Assembly (NCBI RefSeq): GCF_052425735.1
Contig: NC_135761.1
Coordinates: 59,768,001-59,832,000 of the forward strand
DNA from: Oculina patagonica
Taxonomy: Eukaryota
Reading direction: 5' to 3'
DNA length: 64,000 bases
The notes beneath the pieces were generated by a model. That model searched no databases, was not told the DNA's origin, and worked only from the letters and a program-made list of their open reading frames with translations. The position numbers and the translations under genes are program-made. Positions 2,252 through 52,337 of this stretch are shown piece after piece. Every line of letters begins with the position of its first letter. Within the stretch, counting starts at the first letter, position 1.

Positions 2252-5200
2252 ATGGAAGGTAGTTTTGCAAGGGCTTTATACGCTTACCAATCCGATAATC
2301 CTGATGAACTCTCTGTTCCTGAAGGAAGCATTATAAGAATTACTCAATACATAAACAAACATTGGTTGGAAGCTAGTTATCAGGGAGAGACAGGATTGTT
2401 TCCTGTTACTTATGCCGAGAGGTTAAAAAATGAGACGCATATGCAGAACGATGCCTCTACCGATGACGAATTACAAGACAACTTACCATCCAATTGGCAG
2501 GGACAAAACAATGAATTTTATAGACAGAAGGATTTTTCAGCAAAACTCAATAGTGATGATGGGTCTTTTGTAGAAGCTGCCTTTGCTTTTAGTGCTAGAA
2601 ATGACAGCGAGCTTACATTTCCTTCTGGGGCTCTGATAGAGGTTACAAAAGATGTCGATGTGGACTGGCTTGAAGGTTCATTCAATGGCAAGACAGGGCT
2701 TTTTCCAAAGAGTTACCTCAAGTCATCTGAAAAACCATGTGCCCGTGCTGTGTACCCCTTTGTTGGGGAAAGCGTGGGAGAACTTACATTCCGAGAAGGT
2801 GACTGTATCTTTCTTCGTAAGCGTTTGAACTCACAATGGATGGAAGGGGAAATTGATGGCAAAGTCGGGCTTTTCCCCTCAAGCTTTGTTGCTGTCGAAG
2901 TTGAGTTACCACCCGAACAAAATACATTTGTAAATGGAGATTTTAATTTTATGAATTTGCCATCTAATGATGGAGTCCATAACAATACTGTTGCACCAAA
3001 AATCAAATGGAAAAGAGGTATGAAAGGAAGGGCTCTGTTTCATTTTACTGCATTGTACTCAGGAGACCTGGAGTTGAATAAAGGAGATGTTGTCACTGTT
3101 CTTGAAGTTGATGATGATAACTGGATTGAGGGTCAGTTAGCTAATGGAATACGTGGATCATGCCCTGCGGCATATCTGGAACCAGTATATGATACAAGCA
3201 GACTATATGACAATAAATCACTGAAGGCTAGGACTCATGGATTTGTATCTGATGCCAGTTTCTCTGGAATTTTTGATGACTTTGTGTCTGACAGTGGCTA
3301 TATAAACACGTCACAAAAAGGTAGCTCTCGTCAACAGACCAATAATGTTGTTGACTCATACACAAAGAGAGACGATGATGCATACAAACACCTTTTAGAC
3401 TCCTCTTTCATGCAGGATCCAACTCCTGCCCTTCTTCCATCCAACATGCCCACAACTGAGACTCAAGAAACTGGACAAAGAACTCAACCTTTGTTAAAGC
3501 CAAAGCCGGCACTAAGAACTAAACCAACACAAAATTATTCAGTGACATACTTGGGGGGCAAGGATAGTGGAGAACTCTCGGCACCAAAATCTTACCAAAC
3601 CAATGTTAGTCCTTCAATATCCATGCCGTCACTACCAGGTAGAAGTGCACCAGTTCCTAGCTCAAGAGAGATGTCATTAAGCTACCATTCTCAAATTCCA
3701 AATCTTCATCAAGACTCTGCTGGAACTTGGCCTGGCAAAAGAGCAGGGATTCATAGACACATTGCTGATGAAAAGACAAACAGAAAGAACTTTTTCGATG
3801 ATGATGATCTGTTATCAGGCAACTGCACATCATTGCCGACTCCACTGGTTCCATTACCTCAAGCAGGGATCGATGATAGAAATAGTGAATCAAGTACATC
3901 AGAAGATTCTCCAAGAACACCCAAACGACCAGCACCCCCACCCCCGAAACGAGACAGCAGCAGCAAAAATCATGCCCGCAGCAGCACTCTTCCAGCAACT
4001 AGATCAAAGGGTCTTGTACAAAGTGAATTTAGTAGGGAGGCATCATCATCAAAAGCAAAGGACCAGCAACTGTTGGATGGAAAGGACATGAAACAGAATG
4101 GACGGCCACATACCCCTTCTCCAACAGAAAATAAAAGGGACTTTTCCCTTTCCATCAAAGGATCTCCTAAGATGAGAAGAGCTGGTGAAAGTACAAAGCC
4201 TAAACCTCTTTCTAGGCCACATTCTGTGCATTGGAAAGACAGGGATTCTCATTATACAGCAGAGAAGGTACATGTCAGTGGTAGTTAATAAAATTGTGTA
4301 TACATGTAGCCCTTCGCAAAAATGCGAGAGGATTAACAAAGGACCAGTATCAATAAACCCTTCGAGTTTTTTTGTTTTCCATAGGACTGCCTGGTCGCCA
4401 GTGAAAAATCTTAGTCGCTAAATCAAGCTCATGCCTTTAATTGTTCTTCTCAATTTTAGTCGCCAGGGTGGCGACTTTGGTTCCAGTTTAGTCACTAGCT
4501 CCAAAATGTTAGTCGCCATGGCGACTAAATTGGTCTCAACTTGGAGGGTTGCAAGGGTAATATTATTGATGTTTTGCTTGTGTAGAGTCCACTGGAGCTG
4601 AGACGTTCAAACAGTCTAGAAACTTTAAGAGAGGTTAAATCCAGCAGTGTTACCATGGCTACTGGCAGTGCAAAACGCAGCGATCAACAATCTGTCAACA
4701 AAGGTATTAGTTATTTTAACCATAAACAATTGATTTAAACCAATCAGAACATTAATTTTTCTACACATTCTAGCAAAATTAAAGAACATAATGGATACAT
4801 ACATATATTATGACAAAACTACATTTAAATTATTTTATATTAACTGGATTGCATCGCATGTCCAGGAAATTCAACAGAGGGAACTGATGTGCCAGGGCTG
4901 GCAGCACTACAAGAAAGGATTGCTGAGGCAGAGGAGAACCTCAAGGTTTGAAGTTAACATGCACTTTTATACTACAGCACCATTAGTTAATTACATGTTA
5001 TTACAGTACTGTAGCTACAATAAAACTATGGGTCTCTTTAAGTTAAGCAACTATCCAAAACATTTGTCCCAAACTGAACAGTTAAAACTGAACTGTGCTG
5101 TAAATGATACATACAGTAATTTGCAGTTGCAGGGTAAGTGATAGAAACAATAAATTTGAGTGTCCAATCTACAGGTAGGGGTATTTATGGGTATTTACAA

Positions 5201-8200
5201 TGGTGAGCCATTAAGGTGAGAAATTATTTGGACAAGACTATTGTATCGGACTTGTGAAATGAATATTATGTACATGTAATTTTTAACTGGTCCCATACAT
5301 TCATGCTAAAATTACAGAATCCATAACCTATTTCAAGATTTACAGACTTGAAGTGAACAAGCTGTTTAAATAAATGAACATGCTGTTTAATTTACTGCAC
5401 ACAAAACAACAAAACCAGCATATATCAAGGGTGTTACCTAACAGAAAATCTAATGGACCAGTGGGCCCTATTTAAATACTACTGAACAGAAAATATTAAA
5501 ATAAAATGTACTTTACAGATTGTGCAGCACAATAGATTTAATGAATATTCAATAATTATTTTGTTGTAAGATAATAGTTTAATAGTATGTTTATCCTCTT
5601 GTCTGTTAACAGAAGGAAATGAAAGTTCACACTGGATTCAAGACTATTTCTCAGGTACAATGTATGCCTCGTTAGAAGATATTTTAGTAACTTGGACATA
5701 ATGCCACTTTTACTACTTGGCAATTCACGCCATTGATCAGGATGGGCATGTTGGCAACCAGTGTGATCAGTGTGATGGAGCAGGGAACAGCACTCTCCCT
5801 CACGTCAATTGTCTATAAAACATTTTTCTATCCCCTGGATATTACATTATTTTGGGTATCGCATTATACCCTCGTTTATTAAACCTCTGACAATGGGAGC
5901 CCTTGACTCTATAGATAACTTCTGCTCAGGTTGTCAAAACACTTTTGAGTAAGACTTCTATCACTAGCTAGCCTGAAGTTAAGGCGTCTTCTCTGGTCAC
6001 CTACTCCCAGGATCAGATGTCTTTCCCAGGAGTAGGTGACCAGAAAATGACAGAATGAAAAATATTATTCTTACATGTAGCTTGTGATGACTGATCCTGT
6101 TAAGCAAAGAGAAATGGAAGCTAAGGTGTCACAGAGCCAGCAAAAGATAAATGAATGGCAGGAAGAATTAAAACATCTCAAAGGTTTGTTGCGAGCGCCA
6201 ATTGCAATCTATCAATTGCATTTTGGCAATTTCAGATCTCAAATTTTCATGTAGTTTGAGGAGGTGCTAAGTTCAGGAAGGGGAGACTGGATCCCTATCT
6301 GGGGTCATTGCTATGTGTCCTTGGGCAAGGACCTTTACTCTCACAGTGCCTCTTCCCATCCAGGTGTATAAATGGGTACCAGAGAATTTAATACTGGAGA
6401 GGACTGGCATCGTATCCAGGGTGAAGTTAAAATTCCTAAACTGGGATAAGCTCCAAAAGTAAAGGGCACTTTGGCACAGTACCAAATTTTTTTAATATTA
6501 AATTTTCATGAAAAATACTGTGCTACTTTGATTATTTACAAGTGTGACCAATTAACATGCTAATCTTTTTCAGATGAACAAGTCTTTCTGATAGAGTCAC
6601 ACAGGAAAAAAACACTGAAGATTAAAATAGCTGACTTGGAAGCAGACTTAGAGGTATAATTTTCAAAATATTAAGGTGGCTCTGAACCGCTGTTATAATT
6701 TTTTTTAACTTCGCCAAAAGTTGTATCATGACATGTTGATTGAACAGCTGTAATAATAGGGTCACCAAGCTCATTTTTGAGTCATTAGCACTAAATTTAG
6801 GGTTGGTGTTTTCAACAGGTTATACTGTTGCTATGGTAACCACTAGTGTCAAGTATTAGATTTATACAACTTCTTGTCAGCCAATTATTGGGCATTTGTT
6901 TCATACCATTACTGTTATAACAACTGATAAAGAGTTGTAGTAGTGACCAATAAAAGTATAACGTTTGGAAAATGCAAAAAGCCATTACCAGGCACCTTAA
7001 TTAAGTTTAGTATTTCTGTAAATTTCCAGAAACAAAATGCAACCAAAATATTGTTATTGTACTTGTTCTTGGATCTTTAGAGTTGACCATCTATTTTCAG
7101 AAACAAGTGCGAAGTCAGAGAAGTCTTGAAATGTTGCTTGGTGTTGTGGAGGAGAACAGAAAGAAAGAAGTTATGGAGAACCTTGGAGTGTGTGCGCAAC
7201 TTGTGGAGAAGATCAAGCGAGAGCTAACTGAGTTAGAGGGTAAGATATTTAGTAGGTGTGACAGTCAAGTTAGGCAGGTTTAAAAAAATAAAAAACAGCA
7301 AATGTGACCACACAGGCAACTGCAGCTGGTATGATTCGGGTTGGTAGAATTTTGTCAAACTCTTCATTTACCAAACTTCAATAAGCTGGGACAAAAATAT
7401 TGGCAAGCCCTTACAGATTGAACCGATTTTTCGTCTGGCAAGGCATAGAAAATTAATTGTTAGGTTGTGCTTTAAATCATTGTGTTCTTTCTTTACAGTT
7501 TCTCTGCACAGCTTAACAGAAAAACCAGCAGAGTCAAGCCAAAAACACATGGCTGAACAAAGACAGCGAGTCTTGACTGAACTCATTAATACAGAAAAGG
7601 ATTATTGCAATGACCTTGAGCTCTGTGTAAAACACTTTCTGCTTGAACTCCAAGATGCACAGGTCGGTTTCTATATGTTGGTGTACCCTTTTCCAGATGC
7701 TGAGGTTGTGTGTGGGAGCAGGGGGGGGGGGAGGGGGATAAAAGGTGCCAAAAGTAAACAGAGACTGGAAAAGGCTGGTACATGAATGAATGAATAAATG
7801 ATAATGGTTCTTTTATAGCGAATAAATTATTTTACAAAGCTCAATGCGCTTCATAATTAGAGTAACGAGCGCCGAGATCGGACATGCATCAGAATAATTA
7901 TTAGGCCCCTTTGGCAGCTGCTATACATCCTTGTATACGTCCTTTGCTGAGCCATCTAACCCATGGATACATGTGAAAAGGCCAGACCACAAACCAGGAA
8001 ATCTGTGTCCTACTCTTTGCGATTTATAAGTGTGTGGGTTTTTTAACATCCCCTTCTGACCATAACACTGAAGATGCAGGAGATGAGGCCTACATGTATA
8101 GTTTATCATCCTTATCCGAGAAGATTAGAACATCTAATGTAGCGTGACCTCAGTAGAAACATCAGCAGCGTGAGTCAACAGACCTTTAGATTTGTGTGCT

Positions 8201-34932: not shown

Positions 34933-35313
34933 TCAAGTGCTTGCTTGCTTGTACCCCCTCTGCAACTTGCAATAATTGTAATGATGGAAGGTAGCATTGG
35001 CGTTAAACTTTTTAGTTGCTCTGTACTTGTCAGTGGCCAACAACTCACACAGATAAAGATCTTTCGAGTCAGGATACGCCGCCATGTTAAACGAATAACA
35101 CTTTGGTTCACCAACACAAAGGAAAGTGCAATCTAACTGATCTGCCACCATGGACGATGTTATTTTCTTTACCCATAAGTAGTGGAAAGGATTTCGCTGA
35201 AAGTCGCCAACAGAGAAGTCGCCTGTTGGATTTCGATAAAGAGCACTGTCTTCCATAGTGTACATCATCATTAACTGAGAGAACAGAAACAATAGAAGTG
35301 GCAGAAGTACCAT
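34933..35313 (-). pseudogene. Truncated paralog (copy 1): signal peptide + PAN/apple domain only; pseudogene or PAN-only variant
   Basis: Near-identical to exon 1 of the paralogs (SALYRNPTGDFSVGDF...CELLATDKYRATKKF) down to ~34977, where homology stops before the donor site. No EGF or fibrinogen-like exons are visible between it and the gap. Confidence 0.6.
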
Positions 35314-38451: not shown

Positions 38452-40270
38452 TCAGTTGCTGGTCTTTCCGTAGCACTTTAGTTTTCCCAGAGTGTGGTAA
38501 CCCTGTTCGTCAATTTTGTTGTTGATAGTACCGACGTCTCCAAACCTTAGCTGCATCACGGGAAGGTGGGATTTGTTTGTCAGCAAACCGCTGTCCTCGC
38601 GCCACACAGCATCATTTTTGTCGCAGTTGCATCCGTATCTGGTGTATGCGCATGTGTCAGATAACCCGCATGCGCACTCGTAAGGAAATGCGGAATCACT
38701 TCCTCCCCAATACGTCATCTTGTCTCCATCACGTGACACCCACCAGCCAAACATCCCACCGTTGTGTAAGAGCATTGAATGATAACATTCATATTTGATA
38801 AACTGTTCGCAGTGTGCAGATATGGCCGTTAGTTTGCCCAGCTGGAGAAAATCTGCCCCGGTGTACTTAATGTCACGACTGTAACAGCCACGAGTGTCAC
38901 ATCCTTGCACCAACATTTTGCCTTCACTGTCGTGACTGATGACTGTCACGCCAACTTGATTCTTGTCAGTCATGTCGCAGTAAACGGTGAAAGGTGTCAC
39001 GCCTCCTTTTCTATCAGGGTTGATGTCGTAAGAACCACTTGGAGCTTTGGGATTGCACAACTTAATCTCACTACAGCTTTTACTTCCTGCAAGGAAATGT
39101 TGAAACGTTTCTAAAAATCTATGTTTGGTATTGGGCTTGGAACAGAAAAGCCTGATAACAAGTTGAAATTAAACCCGTTATAGAGGTAGTGAAGAACATT
39201 TCCGTTGAATTCCACAGTTTGCCTCCTTTCCATGTCCATCGGGGAAAAGGCGATTGTTATGTTAATGCAATAATACCATGTGACACCAAAAGACGTCACA
39301 GGAAAAACGATGTAATATATAAAAATTCTGTTTAACTTATGTGTTGTTCAAATTTTACAGCTTAAAATGTCTTAGCAGATTCGATAAAGACACCTCTTAT
39401 TTTTGTCCCGAATGAGGGTAATAACATCTCACGAACAAAGTTTGAGAGAAGCCTGATAATTGTGACACTGCTTGACTGTGCCAGGGGGCAGCTTGTAAGC
39501 TAAAGTCAGCATCCAATGTCTACGGGGGAATTTTTCTACGAGATAAATACAGGGTTAAGCCTTTTGAGGCACTGAGGGCATGGAGTTGTAGCTTTCGCGA
39601 GACTTGTTTGAGAGATAGGAATTAATAGATCTTGAAGTTCTCAAAGATCTCAAAGATCTATAAATAAAGTTTGATTGATTGATTGATTGATTGAAGTGGT
39701 ACCTCCGTGTTCGCAGTGAGTTCCACAGAATCCCAGCTTGCAGTGGCAGCGATAGGAGTTCAGTTCGTATTCAGGAACACAGTCCGCACCGTTCTTGCAA
39801 GGATCACTTTCACAAGGAGACTGAAAATAACGTACGAAAAGATTAGCAATAAACACTGTTTCGTAATTATAGCAAGACTTCAAATGACAAAAACTATGTC
39901 TATGAACTATATGATTTACCAATGGGCTGTAATGATGGAAGGTAGCATTAGCGTGAAACTTTTTAGTAGCTCTGTACTTGTCAGTGGCCAACAGCTCACA
40001 CAGATAGAGACCTTTCAAGTCAGGATCCGCCGCCATGTTAAACGAAAAACACTTTGGTTCAGCAACACAAAGGAAAGTGCAATCTAACAGATCTGCCACC
40101 ATGGACGATGTTATTTTCTTTACCCATAAGTAGTGGAAGGGATTTCGCTTAAAGTCACCAACAGAAAAGTCGCCTGTTGGATTTCGATAAAGAGCACTGT
40201 CTTCCATAGCAAACACCATAGTTATGTTAGCCGAGAGAAAGAAAACGAGCACAAGTAGAATATGCGCCAT
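38452..40270 (-). CDS. Secreted PAN/apple-EGF-fibrinogen-like (CASPR/neurexin-IV type) protein, copy 2; 367 aa
   Basis: Exons 40270-39920 (signal peptide + PAN: DCTFLC..KCFSFN..CEL), 39820-39703 (EGF: CESDPCKNGADC..YRCHC..G.HCE) and 39086-38452 (KSCSEIK..SGSY.I.PD..F.VYCDM..HDSE..CEQFIKYEC..YWGG..CACG..CNCD..LPV..FGD..LGKLKCYG). Phases 0/1 are consistent. Confidence 0.88.
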
Positions 40271-43350: not shown

Positions 43351-45290
43351 TTTACATTTTGTCGATATATAAATAGCCAAAATAAGAGAACGAGTGCTTA
43401 AGAGGAGATGGGCGCTTGTAGTTTCAGTGGTGCTGTTTTCAAAATCTACACGTATATGACCCTACCTCAAATTTTCAGAAATTAGAAATTAGCTTTGATT
43501 ACACATTCATGCAAAATTAAATAAAGATCTGGGAGATGTTAGTCCCATCTCAGCTCGTTCCCTTTCTCCATCTTCCCTCGGTCATCCTCGTTTCCTTTTC
43601 CCGCTTGTTGCCCAGGTTAAGAAACTATGTCCCGGATCGTACCAGATGTCAGTTTGAACTTTCAAAATTTATATTTGTGTCGCTGGAAACCTTAAAATAA
43701 TAGTCCATTTTTATTAAGAATTGCTATATTAGAGCACTGAAACTGTTAAGGAGCATGTTTGGCTGCGGATGGCTCGGATGGGAAACGGTTTGCAACTTGA
43801 AATAGTTAGGCTAACGTTTTTTAAGTTTTTTCTGTGCGGCTTCGAAAACTCGATATTTGTAGCGGTTGCTTGATTTCTATCCGCAAATTAAGGTTATATC
43901 TTTCTGTAAATGTTCAAAGATAATGAACAATTACAAACAGAGGTATCCTGAAAATATTAAAATTAACTAGAAAAGGCCAGAGAAAGTACCAGGACTGGGA
44001 AGACTCTTTCCCCATGGCCACCTTTCAATCGCTCCAACTTTTCAATGCGAACTTCTTTCCCGAAGTTTCGCGTTTCCCTCACGCCTCTAAATGTCCCTGG
44101 GTCTCCGAGGATGACGAGTGCTCGCTCCACACAAGTTTTGTTTTTGTAATTTTGAACTGCTGAGTCATTATTTATTGTTTTTGTATTTTATTTCTGACTG
44201 ACTGAGTCATTCTGATTCTAGGAATCAATTCAAGGGAGTTTCAAACTATTTTTAAGTGCCTATAAGTCTGTTGTTTGGTCAGTGTGTATAAAACTGTCAT
44301 TATTTTTTACTTTGAATAGTAGTGGAGGAAAATTTTGGAGTAAAACTCAAGCGGAGAAAAATGACCATTTGCTTGTCTGGCAGTCTTGCACAGAGAAGAA
44401 TTGATGTGCTTTCTTTTTACGCAGTGAGTATAGCAAACGCATGAATTTTGAGTTTTCTACCACACAATTATTCATTCCAAAAAGTTCTTTTTTTGTGAAT
44501 GTCCATGTCTATGAATATCTTAAACTCATTAAAATATGTTTTACCAAGGTAATACAAAATCTACAAGTATAACTTAAATCTAATGACAAAGATGGAATTC
44601 TCTACCAGAATCGATCACTGGTTCGAGTAGCTTCTCTTCTTTTAAGAAAAAAATGATTAAATTTCTAATAAAATGAGTCTGAAATTGGCCTAGCTGCACA
44701 TTCACAGCGAAATTACAAACTTATTGCTAACCCGAGGTGGCCTCCCCCATAAGCCTTGTGGTTTCTTGGAGGTCTCCTCGCCGTATCTTTTTAAGTTTTC
44801 TTTTTTTAATTTGTATGTTTAATTCTGAAGTGGCAAATAAATGATGATGTTGATGATGATGATGATGAAGGAAACATACCTGATTTGGATGCAAAATTGC
44901 AAGCGATGCTACACTTAACGAGTACCATTTTACATCGTTTACTCTGGTCTTCGACCGCCATCTTCAAAACACGTGAAACTCCTTCCTTTTTGGTACTTAT
45001 CGAATAGAATTATGGGTAAATTACTAGAGTACTACCAAACAAACAATGAACAAAGCGAAGTGAATACGAAATTTCAAGATTTTTTAAAATGATTTTCAAA
45101 GAAAATGGTGAAATCCAAGAGGGCGGATCCCAGACGGCGTCTCTTATCACGTCATATGACGTCAAAGCCAACAAAAATTATGCCAAGGGCTTTAAACTCA
45201 GTGCAAAATAATTTTGCTGCGCACTAATAGAATGTAAACGAATAGAAGGAGAAGGGTTGTTTCCATCCACCCCACCCCCCGCTCCCCCTT

Positions 45291-45495
45291 TGTAGTGGAA
45301 TTATGGGACTGATAAACATTAGTCACGTGACATAGCACATGGAGCGAGCAACAGTCGAGCGAGCGCGAGTCTTCCTTCTTCTTGAGTTCTTGTCGAGTCT
45401 GCATCTCCTCGTTTACAGTTAAAGTGTATATAAAGTTGTGTTTACAGTTCATTCTCGTAGTGGTGACTCTCAATTCCCCCGCAAGTCCCTTTACA
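45291..45495 (+). repeat. 5' LTR
   Basis: TGTAGTGG...CCCTTTACA, direct repeat of 48406-48610. Confidence 0.93.
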
Positions 45496-45496
45496 A

Positions 45497-47620
45497 GTGG
45501 TGGAGAACCCAAATTTCGTCGAACTCATCTTGGCAGCTACAATTGAAGAATTGCAAGGCATCGTGGCTGGACTTGTCAGCGTTGTGAAAGACTTAACAAC
45601 AAACGTAACTCAAGTAACCCAAACAGTCGGCAACATGGCCGAAGCCGTTCCAGCACCAGTTCAACACGAACATACACAAGGTCTTCGTATGCCTTCGATG
45701 CAGCTTCCTTCGTTTCGTCGAGATAGTGTGGTACAAGACGATATCTCGGAATTTCTGGAGCGGTTCAACCAGCAAACCTCACATCTTCCCGCCGGAACAC
45801 GTTTCACCCTTCTTGAACAACAGTGTGTTGGCGACTGGCCGAGATCTGTGTTGTCAATAGCAAAAACTACAGAGGGCTACGCAGATAAAGCGGTAGAAGA
45901 CCAATTTAACCTTTGCATTGAAAGATTACGTGCAGAATTCGGCGAATCAAAACAAGACAAGTGCCGCCGATTAGCAGCCGAGTTGAGCGCCATTCAACAA
46001 GAGCGTGGCGAGTCAGTGGAACAGTTTGCGTTCAAATACAAGAAACTACTGCATCAATTGGAGAAACTTGGCGAAAAGATTGCGAAAGATTGTCCTACCT
46101 TTGTTATTTCACAGTTTATTTCTAAAGTCAAGCCTAGTATCGCTCAGCAGCTCGTTGTGAAAGCATCAGAATTTGAAACCCTCGATAAAGCAGTCGAAGC
46201 GGCTCGTCGTGTTGAGTTGTCATTTCAAACTTCGCCCACCGCCTCGAAACCAAATCAGTCGCTCGATGAATGGAAAGTTTCACCACCGAATGCGTTTGTT
46301 TCCTCAACCTCCATGAAATCTCAAGATCAGCACTCCCAACGACAGCAGAGGGCTTGTTACACGTGTGGAGAAACAAATCATCTGTCGATGTCAGTACTGT
46401 CCAAAATACCGCAAAGACACGTCAAAACAACCGGAGATATGCAGAAATTACAATCGATTTTCCAAATCTAATTGCGAGGAAGACGGCAACAAAATGCTCA
46501 TATGGCCAACAACACAAGTGCCAACGCTGTAACAAGTGGAGCTGTAAAGCTATCAAACACTCAGAAAAATCGCCCATCAAGCACACCTCGCAGCGCTGTT
46601 CCATCTGATGAGGTAAATTCTCTTAGGCAGCAACTCGTAGTCTTGTCTACTCGTCTGGAAAAATATGAAGCTCAGTGTACGGAGAAATCCTCGACTTCTA
46701 TTCCTGCAGGATCTGAAAACCAAACCTCAACCTCAGCTTCACGACCACCACCTCCAGCTTCATTTGATCAGCCATCAACATCTACTCCATTATTTGGATT
46801 ACCTGCTGTTACCATCCCTGCACATTCAGCAAAGCCAGAAACTCAGTTGTGTCAGCGTAATATTCTGTGGACCTCTGTTACATCTGCAGGTGAACCACTG
46901 CCCTTGCCATTGGATAGTTGTTGTTCTGTATCTCTTGTGAGCAAAGTACATGCTGATCTTGTTGCATCCAAACGACCTGACCTCAAGTATTGTGCCCTTG
47001 AAGAACACATTTCTGTTACCTCTGCGGATTCAAAGTCTGATCTTAAAGCAGTCGCCACTATGAAAATCCCCATCACATGGGAAAATGAAACAGAAACTGT
47101 CTTTACTATGCTCGTAGTTCCAGGTTTTGTCTGGCCAATGCTCTTTGGAGAGAACCACCTTCATGCGACTCAAGCATTGGTTGATCATTATGCTACGTCC
47201 ATCACCTTTCGCCATCCAAGTATGCAGTTTCGAGTCCAGTGCTCGCTTGACAATCCACTTCAAGGTTTTGCAAACATCTCTGTACCCAATAGTTCCTCAT
47301 CGTGTGCAAGTGGATCAACATCGCAGAAGCCTCATGTCAGTATTACATGCCTTCTTACCGGAGCACCACCACTGGGTGTTCTCAAGCATTCACAATCCCT
47401 TTACCGTGGTCTTAATTTTGTTACAGTCTGTGTCACCCTTTCTGCAGCTTTAATGGGATACCAAGTAATGCGTCAACCGCTTTGGATTGAGGGTAAAGAC
47501 GTTCAACCAGGTGTCAAGGTTCTCAGTGGTCCCTTTGATCTCAGCCAAATCTCAAGTCATGTGAAACCTGAAACAGCACGTCCTAGCAGTGATCGGTGCT
47601 ACAATGCTCACAATGTATCT
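45497..47620 (+). pseudogene. Frameshifted gag-protease ORF of the LTR element
   Basis: Capsid-like motifs (LPSFR..DISEFLERF, IQQERGESVEQFA, QFISKV, TLDKAVEAARRVE), zinc knuckle CYTCGETNH, frameshifts near 46390, 46494 and 46570, and a retropepsin-like segment LDSCCSVSLVS...MLFGENHL. Confidence 0.8.
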
Positions 47621-48381
47621 CCAATTCCTGGTACTGGTCAAATTAGTCCATTCTTCTACCTGAAGAAAGCCTCTCAAGAAGCACCTATGCAGAGCAGCTT
47701 GTGTCTCGTATGCGTGAAGCACAAAAACAGTTCAACAGCATCAAAGCGGATATGAAGAGAACTCAAAGAGAATATTATGATAAATCATCCAGGGAACTTA
47801 ACATTGCAGAAGGAAAGCAAGTTTATGTTAGAAGACCACCTCCGAGTTCACAACCAAAAGGATCAGCCATACGGTTCATTCGTCGATTTGATGGTCCTTA
47901 CACTATTATAGGACATGTTCATGGTCGCCAGGATCTATTGCGACTTCGACACAAATTCACTCAGGATGAGATTAAAACAGTAAACATTGAAAAGATCATT
48001 GTTGTGCCAGATGAACTTTCAGAAGAAGTAGATTATGATCTCAGAAATAATGAAGAACCACCATCTAACACAGAGACAGTTACCCCTCCTGAATTACCCA
48101 CTCGAAAGAGTGCAGCAATTGATCCTGATTTGGCAAAGTTAGCATTTGCTCTTGGACATTATCTGAACAGTCTACCAGGTGCAAAGGCATATGCATCAGA
48201 AGCCTGCAAAGTGGTGTACCAGCAGATTCCAGATGCACAGGAAATTTTGAAACGTTGCGGAAAACTTAAAGGACTGATTTCAAAGTGCCCTTATCTATCC
48301 ATGTCTGGAGGCTCAAATGGAGGAACTTACTTGTTAAAACTTGACAAAGAGATGTTTGCAACTTTAGTTTCAGAAAACTAA
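47604..48381 (+). pseudogene. Integrase C-terminal remnant with GPY/F motif plus an extra C-terminal domain
   Basis: AHNVSPIPGTGQISPFF (end of the integrase core), then YAEQLVSRMREA...QREYYD...GKQVYVR...RRFDGPY..., then a ~85-aa folded-looking tail ending just before the PPT. Confidence 0.78.
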
Positions 48382-48405
48382 AATCCCTTTTAAGAAGGGG
48401 TGGAC

Positions 48406-48610
48406 TGTAGTGGAATTATGGGACTGATAAACATTAGTCACGTGACATAGCACATGGAGCGAGCAACAGTCGAGCAAACGCGAGTCTTCCTTCTTCTTGA
48501 GTTCTTGTCGAGTCTGCATCTCCTCGTTTACAGTTAAAGTGTATATAAAGTTGTGTTTACAGTTCATTCTCGTAGTGGTTACTCTCAATTCCCCCGCAAG
48601 TCCCTTTACA
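48406..48610 (+). repeat. 3' LTR
   Basis: Direct repeat of the 5' LTR, preceded by a polypurine tract and followed by the TSD CCTT. Confidence 0.93.
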
Positions 48611-49850
48611 CCTTGTACCACGGTGGGTGGATAACTAGGAATGCGTTTTAACATTGTAGTTACGCTTTCTCTAACACGGATGGACATTAAATGAAGTTGA
48701 GATAATTTTTGAGCTCACCAGTGTCGACTCTCGCTTCGTGTAGAATAAAAAGTCAATACACAAACTCAGGTTTGTCGAATATGTGATTAACTTTAGGGAT
48801 TGACCACAGATCATGCAGTTAATATCATAGCAAGTGTCAGGTACGGCTGCAAACTGGATAAGTGAAAAATAATTCACAGACCTGGTATAATTCATCAGAA
48901 AATATATCTAAACACAGATTTATTAATATTACTGTTGGCTTTATTCAAAGGCTTATTAGCAAGAGCGAATTTAATTAATTAATAACAATAACATTTATAA
49001 TGCGCAAATTTCATGAAATTTTCAAGTGCAACAAGATTAAAAACCAAAACTAGGCTAGAAAGCTTAAATTACAATTTTTAATTACATTGTTTAAGTTTCC
49101 ATTACATGCTTTCTCGTTTAAGGAAACTAATAAAGTCATGAAAGCCATCTGGAAGACCCGGTGTAAGTATCTGACTTGTACGCATGTAATTCAAACCATC
49201 CCGACAGCCTGATAACCCGTCTCTCATCAACAAATTTCTACACACTTTAACTTTAATATTTGCTTAATTATATTCCATTTGTTATATGTAAATGAAGGCA
49301 AACTTGGCTTAAAAAAGAAACAACAAATCGCAACAATAGAAATAACTTATATCTGACCATTTGATTTCATGTTTAAATGTATTGACCATCAAACTTCGAT
49401 AACGATACGAAAGAAGGACTGAAAGAACAAAATCAAGTCATTCCCCGGGATTGTTGTAAGTGAGATTTTATAATCTACATTCATTGACAAAAGTCGTTGG
49501 CCCACCCACCCTCATTCCCCCGTGCAGTGCGTTTCAGTTTGTGAGAAAAAGTAGGCAGCAATTGAAGGCATTAATTTTTTACATGCTACGCAACATTGCA
49601 AAAGGGGATAGGGGAAATTACATGACTTTTTCATGTTTTAAGTAAGAACAACAGAAACTGCAATGATTGTCAATGATTGTAGCCTTACCGAAATTCAATA
49701 GTGACTTTAAGTGAAATTAACTGGTGTTTACTACATTTATAATCACTTTATTTCTGGAAATATTTTTATGACAATCCGATGGCAGACTACCATAGTATAC
49801 GAACTGACATGAATTAACACTCAACACGTCAAGTTAATAAGTCTTGTGAT

Positions 49851-52337
49851 TCAGTTATTGCGTGAGATTCCAAAACACTTTAGTTTTCCAAGAGTGTGGT
49901 TACCATGTTCGTTTTTGTAGTCGGTGTCTCCAAACCTGAGCTGCATCACGGGAAGGTGGGACTTGTTTGTCAACATACCGCTGTCCTCGCGCCACACAGC
50001 ATCATTTATGTCGCAGTTACACCCGTAACTGTTGTTTGCACAGGTTCCAGTTACTCCACATGCGCATTTGTAAGGAAAGCTGGAGTTGCTTCCTCCCCAA
50101 TACGTCATCTTATCTCCATCACGTGATACCCACCAGCCATACATCCCACCATTTTGTAAGAGCACTGAGGCATGACATTCGTACTTGATAAACTGCTCAC
50201 AGTGTGCAGATATGGCTGTTAGATTTCCCAATTGGTGAAGATTTGCCCCAGTGTACTGAACGTCACGACTGTAACAACCTTCTTTTTTGCATCCACTTAC
50301 CGGCGTTCTGTCTTCACTATCGTGACTGATGACTGTCACGCCAACCTTGCTCTTGTCAGTCATGTCACAGTCAACAGTGAAAGGTGTCACGCCTCCATCT
50401 CCATCAGGGTCGATGACGTAAGAACCACTTGTAGCTTTGGGATTGTGTGACTTAATCTTACTACAACTTTTATATACTGCAAGGAAGTTTGAAAAGTTTC
50501 TTAATATACTAAGCTATGTTTGGTTTTGGAAATAACATGATTTCTAAAGGATGTACAGATCAAAAGTCATTTTCAAACTTATAGGGCAGTAAAGCACTTT
50601 GCCGTTGAATTCAGTTCTCAGTTTACCTTCTTTATATTTCACTCGGGAGAATGGTGGTTACTAAGTTCCTTACAATGCTATTATGTGACTGGCTGAACAT
50701 TAGTCCCCCGACGTTTATGTTGTCTGTGGACTGTGATAATTTATTCCAATTTCCAAATATGGAATGAATTAAGTTTGTTTGTATCTAGCTACTATTATAT
50801 CCGTATATACGGTGATTCCAAATGCGACATGATTCATGATGTGGTTTAAATTTTTAACAGAAACCTTTTTATGGTGAAGAAATTATTCTACATGACACGA
50901 GCATGGGACAAAGAAAAAATCTGAGTCCCCGATGAGACAAAGAAAAAATCTGAGTCCCCGACGGGAATCGAACACATGGCCTCCCAGATACCGGTTGGGC
51001 GTTCTAACCAACTGAGCTACGTGAGACTCGCTGTGAGCTGGGCCATTTTTACTAGGTTGATAAGTGGCCCAGCTCACAGCGAGTCTCACGTAGCTCAGTT
51101 GGTTAGAGCGCCCAACCAGTATCTGGGAGGCCATGGGTTCTATTCCCGTCGGGGACTCAGATTTTTTCTTTGTCCCACGCTCGTGTCATGTAGAATAATT
51201 TCTTCACTACTTATCACCGAGCTTAAAATCTACCATCTTTATTATTTACAACCTTTTTATTTTGAGCAATTTGTTTAGCAACATTTGAAATATTTGGGGC
51301 AACTTTTCAGCAATTTACAATCACAATCTGGATAGGGTACTCGATAGGACAAGTAGTTTTTATGTTGTTCGAGAGAAGCTACACGTAGGTGCTAATCGTC
51401 ATATGGTCGCCTGAAAGCAAATGACAGCAGTCCTGGCCTGGGATTTTTTTATGGAGGAACAGGATTGAGTCTTTTCTAAAACAATTTCTAAGCAACTTTT
51501 AGGTATTTTTCAAAGCAACTTTTTCGCAATTTTCTAGCGCAATGTGGATTGAGAGCAACTTAGAAGCTAACTGCAGCTACGCGTAGGTGCTAGCCGTGGC
51601 ATGATGGCTTGCAATTGAAAGCTCATGACAGCAGTCACTGACCTGGGAGTTTTCATGTTAAAAATTAGTATTGAATTTCCTGGTGTTGTAGAATTCCCTA
51701 GACTTGTGTTAGAAATGCATGGGTATTGAGACATATGAAAGTATATCCCTCATACCTTTGTGTTCGCAGTGAATTCCATAATATTTCTTCTTGCAGTGAC
51801 AGCGATAGGAGTTCAATTCATATTCAGGAACACAGTCGGCACCGTTCTTGCAAGGATCGCTTTCACAGGGAGACTGAAAATAACGCACGAAAAGAAAAGT
51901 AATGGGGACTACTTTGTATTTGCAGTGAGGCTACAAACGAATTGAACTAGCTAAAAAGAGTGCAGACTAAATATGTTTTGCCTTACCCAAGGACTGTAAT
52001 GATGGAAGGAAGCATTGGCGTGAAACTTTTTAGTTGCTCTGTACTTGTCAGTGGCCAACAACTCACACAGACAAAGACCTTTCGAGTCAGGATACGCCGC
52101 CATGTTAAACGAATAACACTTTGGTTCACCAACACAAAGGAAAGCGCAATCTAACTGATCTACCACCATGGACCATGTTATATTCTCTACCCGTAAGTAG
52201 TGGAAGGGATTCTGCTTAAAGTTACCAAAAGAAATGTCGCCTGTTGGATTTCGATACAAAGCACTTTTTTCCATAGCAAACACCATCGCTATGTGAGCTG
52301 AATGAAGAAAAACGAGCAAAAGTAAAAAAAGCGCCAT
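49851..52337 (-). CDS. Secreted PAN/apple-EGF-fibrinogen-like protein, copy 3; 364 aa
   Basis: Exons 52337-51987, 51873-51756, 50476-49851; same motifs and phases as copy 2; open throughout. Confidence 0.88.
50874..51207. repeat. Palindromic pair of tRNA-like units in intron 2 of copy 3
   Basis: ~140-bp arms around a ~19-nt spacer; each arm has A/B boxes reading outward. Confidence 0.85.

Follow-up and report, generated by a model that had tools for sequence, protein, structure and literature searches.

In chromoviruses the chromodomain, which serves as a targeting module, follows the GPY/F motif at the C-terminus of the integrase. The locus described here raises the question of what a Ty3/Gypsy integrase carries when a different module occupies that position, and whether such a module could also choose the landing site of the element. 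The window, by which we mean the entire 64,000-nt stretch of Oculina patagonica DNA that was analysed, contains at 45291-48610 an LTR element of 3.3 kb that harbours a 90-aa tail in the place held by the chromodomain in chromoviruses. The original prediction read this tail as a winged helix resembling LOTUS/OST-HTH domains and suggested integration targeting as one of its possible roles. The features of the element and its immediate flanks are as follows, with window coordinates and strand.

45263-45290, no strand: host target, a C-rich tract on the + strand (G-rich on the - strand), immediately upstream of the element
45287-45290, no strand: left target-site duplication CCTT, 4 bp; the same four bases stand after the 3' LTR
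45291-45495, + strand: 5' LTR, 205 nt, with TG...CA ends, 98.5-99% identical to 48406-48610
45498-45510, + strand: primer-binding-site-like TGGTGGAGAACCC, TGG-type, 2 nt past the 5' LTR; the motif is kept in families A-E
45497-46471, + strand: gag open frame with one weak CCHC zinc knuckle (zf-CCHC, E=0.0013), terminated by a stop at 46469-46471
46472-47610, + strand: continuation of the gag-pol frame (protease region) as far as the internal deletion
near 47598-47657, + strand: deletion junction, where positions 3267-6381 of the intact copy L031 are missing
47701-48108, + strand: integrase C-terminal region, with the GPY motif followed by a Pro/Glu/Thr-rich linker
48109-48378, + strand: 90-aa tail, a predicted winged helix (folded part about 48124-48375)
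48392-48405, + strand: polypurine-tract-like AAGAAGGGGTGGAC right before the 3' LTR; the motif also precedes the 3' LTR in families A and B
48406-48610, + strand: 3' LTR, 205 nt
48611-48614, no strand: right target-site duplication CCTT

LTRs with TG...CA ends, a primer-binding-site motif, a purine tract and a 4-bp duplication are hallmarks of Ty3/Gypsy elements (Metaviridae), and all are present in the window copy; the position of TGGTGGAGAACCC suggests that it serves as the primer-binding site. The window sequence at 45290-47610 matches L031 952-3266 with 98% identity, after which the copy lacks the 3.1 kb of L031 that encode the reverse transcriptase, RNase H and the zinc finger and core of the integrase. 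Relative to L031, a further 48 nt are missing directly past this deletion and 89 nt are missing between the stop codon and the LTR. The stop after gag is absent from intact copies, L031 being a single 2018-aa frame throughout, and in the window copy gag and the tail lie in different registers. With its internal deletion, the window copy is a dead, non-autonomous Ty3/Gypsy relic of a tail-bearing family.

The open frame that contains the tail (47701-48381, + strand, with its stop at 48379-48381) reads as first described, with the GPY motif and the P/E/T-rich linker preceding the 90 residues of interest. It had also been described as ending right at the polypurine tract, which is true of the window copy but not of intact copies, where ∼120 nt separate the stop from the LTR. 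In intact family A (L031 7216-7350) the purine tract and the first LTR bases are doubled, ∼110 nt apart, between the stop and the 3' LTR, and the same doubling downstream of the tail is seen in L059, L063, L064 and L068. The window copy has only one such copy of the purine tract, as would be expected if the two had recombined and the spacer had been lost.

A six-frame search of the coral genome found tail matches at 34 places, which fall into three families, each listed here with one copy.

Family A: L031, 2018-aa gag-pol, tail 97% identical to the window tail
Family B: L033, 1429-aa pol, tail about 58% identical to the window tail
Family C: L032, 2023-aa gag-pol, tail about 35% identical, with about 100 extra residues after the tail

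Families D and E have LTRs of 420-480 nt and tails that are about 46% identical. Tail identity ranges from 35 to 97% over all copies and from 35 to 63% between families, with 24 positions invariant among six sequences; the linker that precedes the tail is unconserved. The order of Pfam matches in L031 is that of Gypsy elements (RVT_1 974-1130, RT_RNaseH 1219-1322, Integrase_H2C2 1540-1595, rve 1610-1707), zf-CCHC is also among the Pfam matches in intact copies, and the GPY region and integrase core are common to all tail-bearing families. The LTRs of intact tail-bearing copies are 97-100% identical, and those of L031 and L034 are 100% identical, which indicates that the family is young.

A profile search of 1.84 billion representatives extended this distribution with 120 tail relatives at E<=1e-3, nearly all of them short C-terminal pol fragments, in clusters that include members named Montipora foliosa and Oculina patagonica and, in one case, a protein of the octocoral Paramuricea clavata. 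The tail is present in at least five diverged families, one of them octocoral. It also marks a clade boundary, being found in every integrase relative that is at least 52% identical and has a complete C-terminus, and being absent from the next relatives (28-29%). The tail is a conserved domain of intact, young elements and not a chance extension of an open frame. Its presence in related intact elements had been proposed as a check, and it is kept in the 2018-aa and 2023-aa polyproteins as well as in the 1429-aa pol.

Several matches at the margins of this search deserve mention in their own right. One sequence returned as a tail relative, P0104, was rejected as a spurious match to a low-complexity repeat. 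In the 287-aa protein P0067 a 51-residue piece of the tail (E 4e-22) is joined to leucine-rich repeats, and this is probably either a gene prediction that took in part of a transposon or the product of exonisation. The tail profile also has weak tandem matches (whole-library E about 1e-4) in P0118 (residues 1-470), P0124 and P0119, and at loci L054/L055. One of the two weakly matching proteins, which are of metagenomic or metatranscriptomic origin, is 2206-2568 aa long and combines ankyrin repeats with a region resembling UvrD helicases, the second is a hypothetical protein of 458 aa, and they have in common the pattern 'aS.aC..lY...P.ak..l...GGl+.l'. The weakly matching regions had no match to a Pfam family and a word search around the giant metagenomic protein P0118 returned no relatives; these proteins (P0118, P0124 and P0119) may be cellular relatives or the source of the tail domain. 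The roughly 100 residues that follow the winged helix in family C (L032:535-831:-; also L087-L097 and P0171-P0173) are conserved across species, including Oculina patagonica, and gave no Pfam match and no confident AlphaFold2 fold (pLDDT about 30).

AlphaFold2 run on a 51-row alignment of the tail returned a model with a pLDDT of 88 and a pTM of 0.78, in which the elements follow the order H6-20, E26-28, H29-39, H43-49, H52-59, E63-66, E75-78 and H80-89. Folding the family C tail on its own reproduced this order, with a pLDDT of 77-92. On these models a winged-helix fold is predicted for the tail at high confidence, consisting of a helix bundle followed by a beta-hairpin wing to which an N-terminal strand pairs. 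The helix-helix-hairpin pattern originally recognised in the sequence is thereby borne out in two families; neither disorder nor a chromo/SH3-like fold is predicted. With no chromo Pfam match in any copy and a winged helix predicted in its place, the tail is, as had been proposed, not a chromodomain.

The 50 best structural matches were all winged helices. Foldseek against the PDB returned generic winged helices only, none of them at E<=1e-3, and a sequence-profile search of the PDB with the tail gave nothing at E<=10. A PadR-like regulator (8.0), SarX (7.8) and an NRG1 winged helix (7.7) tied in structural score, and a second comparison agreed. The tail is basic, with a median pI of 9.1, and conserved Lys/Arg residues at positions 34, 44, 49, 52 and 54 lie on helices 2-4 of the model; the hairpin is rich in glycine. 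The helix-turn-helix face with its basic residues, together with the wing, is the usual nucleic-acid side of a winged helix.

The proposed likeness to LOTUS and Egalitarian domains held in part. LOTUS domains (MARF1, TDRD5, TDRD7 and Tejas) and Egalitarian are among the best structural neighbours of the tail, and a bacterial OST-HTH cluster in the ESM Atlas matches the tail model at TM 0.66/0.74. A feature search of the ESM Atlas gave OST-HTH 0.85, Egalitarian 0.83 and TTC3 0.78, all of them below the 0.9 level. LOTUS domains have a winged helix-turn-helix core, to which an extended subclass adds a C-terminal helix 5 (PMC5458760), and the order of elements in the tail model agrees with that of extended LOTUS, including the predicted C-terminal helix at residues 80-89.

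Membership of the OST-HTH family, on the other hand, was not supported. Neither PF12872 nor any other Pfam family matched the window tail or any of 51 aligned members at E<=10, and the same OST-HTH profile picked up 17 cellular LOTUS exons in this genome. The window integrase C-terminal region at 47701-48108 likewise matched zero Pfam families at E<=10, and further Pfam scans covering the whole integrase C-terminus and the metagenomic proteins gave nothing relevant. Comparison by hhalign of the 51-row tail alignment with 10 LOTUS domains of this coral gave a probability of 0.3%, in a test whose sensitivity is limited by the small LOTUS profile. The structural scores of LOTUS domains also tie with those of PadR, SarX, forkhead and ORC winged helices. 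We therefore treat the tail as a winged-helix family of its own, new and closest in appearance to LOTUS, and file it outside that family.

The suggestion that the tail is an integration-targeting module draws strong indirect support from the insertion sites, where a very strong bias was found. Both flanks are readable for 14 independent elements, which represent five families and come from at least three assemblies and from an octocoral: the window copy, L031 and L034 (family A), L033 (B), L032 and L035 (C), L056, L103, L104 and L106 (other coral assemblies), L107 and L108 (D), L109 (E) and L110 (octocoral). All 14 have a G:C homopolymer or G-rich tract 0-11 nt from one LTR edge, for which the chance at the background rate (0.46% per strand-specific 30-nt window, measured in 121 kb of host DNA) is about 4e-29. 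A C-run precedes the 5' LTR in six cases and a G-run follows the 3' LTR in eight; read on the G strand, the element always lies 5' of the run, and the opposite arrangement occurs zero times (polarity 14:0, p=1.2e-4). Some tracts are pure G10-G20 runs, and at the other extreme are G-rich stretches that contain interruptions and match G-quadruplex motifs. For the 25 nt adjoining the window element G4Hunter returned -1.96, an absolute score of 1.5 or more being reached in 0.4% of background windows.

Copies from the same genome that could be read only at their 3' flank follow this trend, with a run of at least six G within 30 nt in 10 of 25 (P=1.4e-17). Three of these copies without a G-run in the 3' flank, L001, L003 and L028, have a C-run in the 5' flank, read via the window, L034 and L035, and eleven further copies without a downstream G-run were read on the 3' side only. 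The single tail-less Gypsy control (n=1) is L111, taken from a related assembly, and neither of its ends adjoins a tract. Pfam matches in L111 list integrase families ahead of the reverse transcriptase, and its gene order may be Gmr1-like. Among 45 loci in a short-read metagenome there were few downstream G-runs, with one clear G-rich flank (L059) among the ∼7 that have defined ends, and several of these contigs pass from the LTR straight into the primer-binding site. We assume that the scarcity of G-runs in these contigs reflects assembly breaks and LTR collapse, the G-runs themselves probably remaining unassembled.

Clean 4-bp target duplications separate the LTR from the tract, and in several cases the run's first bases form part of the duplication, which indicates that the tract pre-dates the insertion and excludes a G-run added by the element. 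More generally, the association might have arisen otherwise than at integration, through selection for survival, homopolymer artefacts of assembly or G residues supplied by the element. Homopolymers are indeed error-prone in assemblies, and retained insertions are the only ones visible. Against this, the pattern is seen in very young copies with LTRs that are 99-100% identical, in at least three independent long-read assemblies as well as an NCBI octocoral assembly, and with exact 4-bp duplications between the LTR and a tract that may lie at either end of the element yet always has one polarity; furthermore, survival bias could not produce a precision of 0-11 nt. We consider an origin other than at integration highly improbable.

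A specific repeat family bearing G-runs was also considered as the target and rejected, as the flanks past the tract show no significant similarity to one another apart from a single pair. In that pair, an element of family A (L004, contig 6, about 30.37 Mb) and one of family C (L035, contig 4, about 13.86 Mb) occupy the same nucleotide position, with TAAG as the duplication in both, and the two host sequences there are similar copies, each starting with a G-run. L004 and L035 are independent insertions at the same spot.

The reading we favour, with a probability of roughly 0.6, is that the tail directs integration to G-tracts. The winged helix, rather than another part of the integrase, would read the tract by direct binding of G-rich nucleic acid, whether as duplex, as exposed G strand or as G-quadruplex. 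An intasome docked in this way at the 5' edge of the G-run would carry out strand transfer 0-11 bp from the run, and the element would in effect choose non-coding homopolymers as a 'safe haven'. So strict a polarity speaks for a feature that is itself asymmetric and is recognised in one orientation; nucleosome exclusion or DNA stiffness alone would not yield polarity. The long and probably flexible linker before the tail fits awkwardly with the tight distance and strict polarity. For LOTUS domains an affinity of about 10 nM for poly(G) RNA has been reported, along with binding of RNA G-quadruplexes (PMC7498356). The same study found that they bind DNA G-quadruplexes weakly, which counts against direct reading by the tail (PMC7498356).

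A more specific version would make the tail a true but highly diverged LOTUS-type domain, captured by the retrotransposon and reading G-quadruplex or single-stranded G-rich nucleic acid at chromosomal G-runs. We regard this as a tentative and somewhat unlikely reading. If it is true, these elements would be the first LTR retrotransposons with an integrase guided by nucleic-acid structure and not by a chromatin mark or host tether, and their tails would for the first time place LOTUS-like domains in proteins other than cellular ones of the germline and of RNA metabolism.

Since both the tail and the G-tract bias descend with the integrase as a unit, it is to the tail's own role that the figure of 0.6 applies. 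Co-inheritance would also suit G-tract targeting by the integrase core or GPY region, or by the shape of the target DNA, with the tail doing a different job, such as binding RNA or cDNA of the element itself, serving in multimerisation or nuclear import, or interacting with germ granules or Vasa. LOTUS-like folds act on RNA and in germ granules, which is in keeping with such jobs, and the elements' own polypurine tracts contain short G-runs. The C-terminal position of the tail, however, is the site of the targeting modules in chromoviruses, and the shape of poly(dG:dC) alone would not yield a one-sided 14:0 polarity. Among the further roles first suggested, Vasa binding, germ-granule homing and silencing evasion gained no support from these observations. 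We think it unlikely that the targeting lies outside the tail.

The tail might alternatively recognise the tract indirectly, by tethering the integrase to a host protein bound to G-tracts or G-quadruplexes (a helicase, for example, or a factor that binds poly(C)/poly(G)), much as LEDGF does for HIV and BET proteins do for MLV. Such a tether would explain the observed targeting equally well, and winged helices, including extended LOTUS, can bind proteins. In Oskar, TDRD5 and TDRD7 the LOTUS domains bind the Vasa helicase through helix 2 and the C-terminal helix (PMC5458760), and the tail model has a C-terminal helix of its own at residues 80-89. A distance of 0-11 nt with fixed polarity is nevertheless tighter than in the tethered systems described to date, the tail is basic with conserved Lys/Arg on the helix-turn-helix face, and it has no known partner. 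We judge tethering improbable, and prefer direct reading of the G-tract by the tail.

Compared with the chromovirus integrase (MAGGY and Tf1-related elements), the coral elements share a small extra domain after GPY/F, non-random integration and the gag-PR-RT-RNase H-IN order. In contrast to the chromodomain, the coral tail is predicted to be a winged helix and not a chromo/SH3-like barrel, and the apparent target of the coral elements is a G-run read within a few nucleotides rather than a histone mark. What appears to be new here is the predicted winged-helix domain on the C-terminus of a Ty3/Gypsy integrase; the architecture, with a module after GPY/F, was already known from chromoviruses. 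Generic winged helices (PadR, SarX/MarR, forkhead and ORC/Cdc6/Cdt1) have no sequence relationship to the tail, and to our knowledge none of them occurs as an integrase appendage or reads homopolymeric G.

Precise choice of a 'safe' target is familiar from other elements: Ty3 targets Pol III start sites, Ty5 targets via Sir4, and R1-clade non-LTR elements target microsatellites, the last choosing a simple repeat as the coral elements do. Ty3 and Ty5, however, rely on host-protein tethers, and the elements that specialise in microsatellites belong to the non-LTR class and have endonucleases. With LOTUS/OST-HTH domains the tail shares a predicted winged-helix core, four helices before the hairpin and a C-terminal helix as in extended LOTUS, and LOTUS domains bind poly(G) or G-quadruplex RNA (PMC7498356) where the coral elements land at G-runs. 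The tail differs from LOTUS domains in lacking sequence or profile similarity to them, in sitting in a retrotransposon integrase and in its putative ligand, which would be chromosomal DNA. Two reports describe a statistical enrichment of retroviral integration near non-B DNA, G-quadruplex motifs or R-loops (PMC9962126, PMC11616997). The enrichments they describe are regional, whereas the coral junction lies at the tract edge, with strand polarity, in every element examined. In a literature search of incomplete coverage, G-run specificity was not described for any LTR element, nor a winged helix for any Gypsy integrase.

The C-terminal modules of integrases decide where retroelements land, and few kinds are understood, namely chromodomains, the Ty5/Ty1 tethers and the LEDGF/BET tethers. 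The coral elements add a compact, apparently self-contained domain of 85 residues that is linked to nucleotide-precise, strand-polar insertion, in an association conserved from stony corals to an octocoral. The bias towards G-runs suggests a mode of landing-site choice that is new for such an element. Should the tail be what reads the run, it would provide a tractable system in which to ask how DNA sequence or structure steers an intasome, a natural animal example of 'safe-haven' targeting and a possible functional bridge to the poly(G) and G-quadruplex binding of LOTUS domains. Targeting of this kind also leads one to expect structural variation in coral genomes to be concentrated at G-runs.

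Two other features of the window were recorded. Direct repeats of 282 nt at 34977-35258 and 39928-40209, which are 94.7% identical, 5 kb apart and start with TGTAATGA, have no long open frame between them and no G:C run directly at their ends, and probably represent a decayed or non-autonomous LTR element. Downstream of the tail-bearing element by 1.2 kb, a 179-aa open frame at 49851-50390 (- strand) had no match to a Pfam family at E<=0.01; it is rich in Cys, Trp and Gly and looks like an exon of a host extracellular protein.
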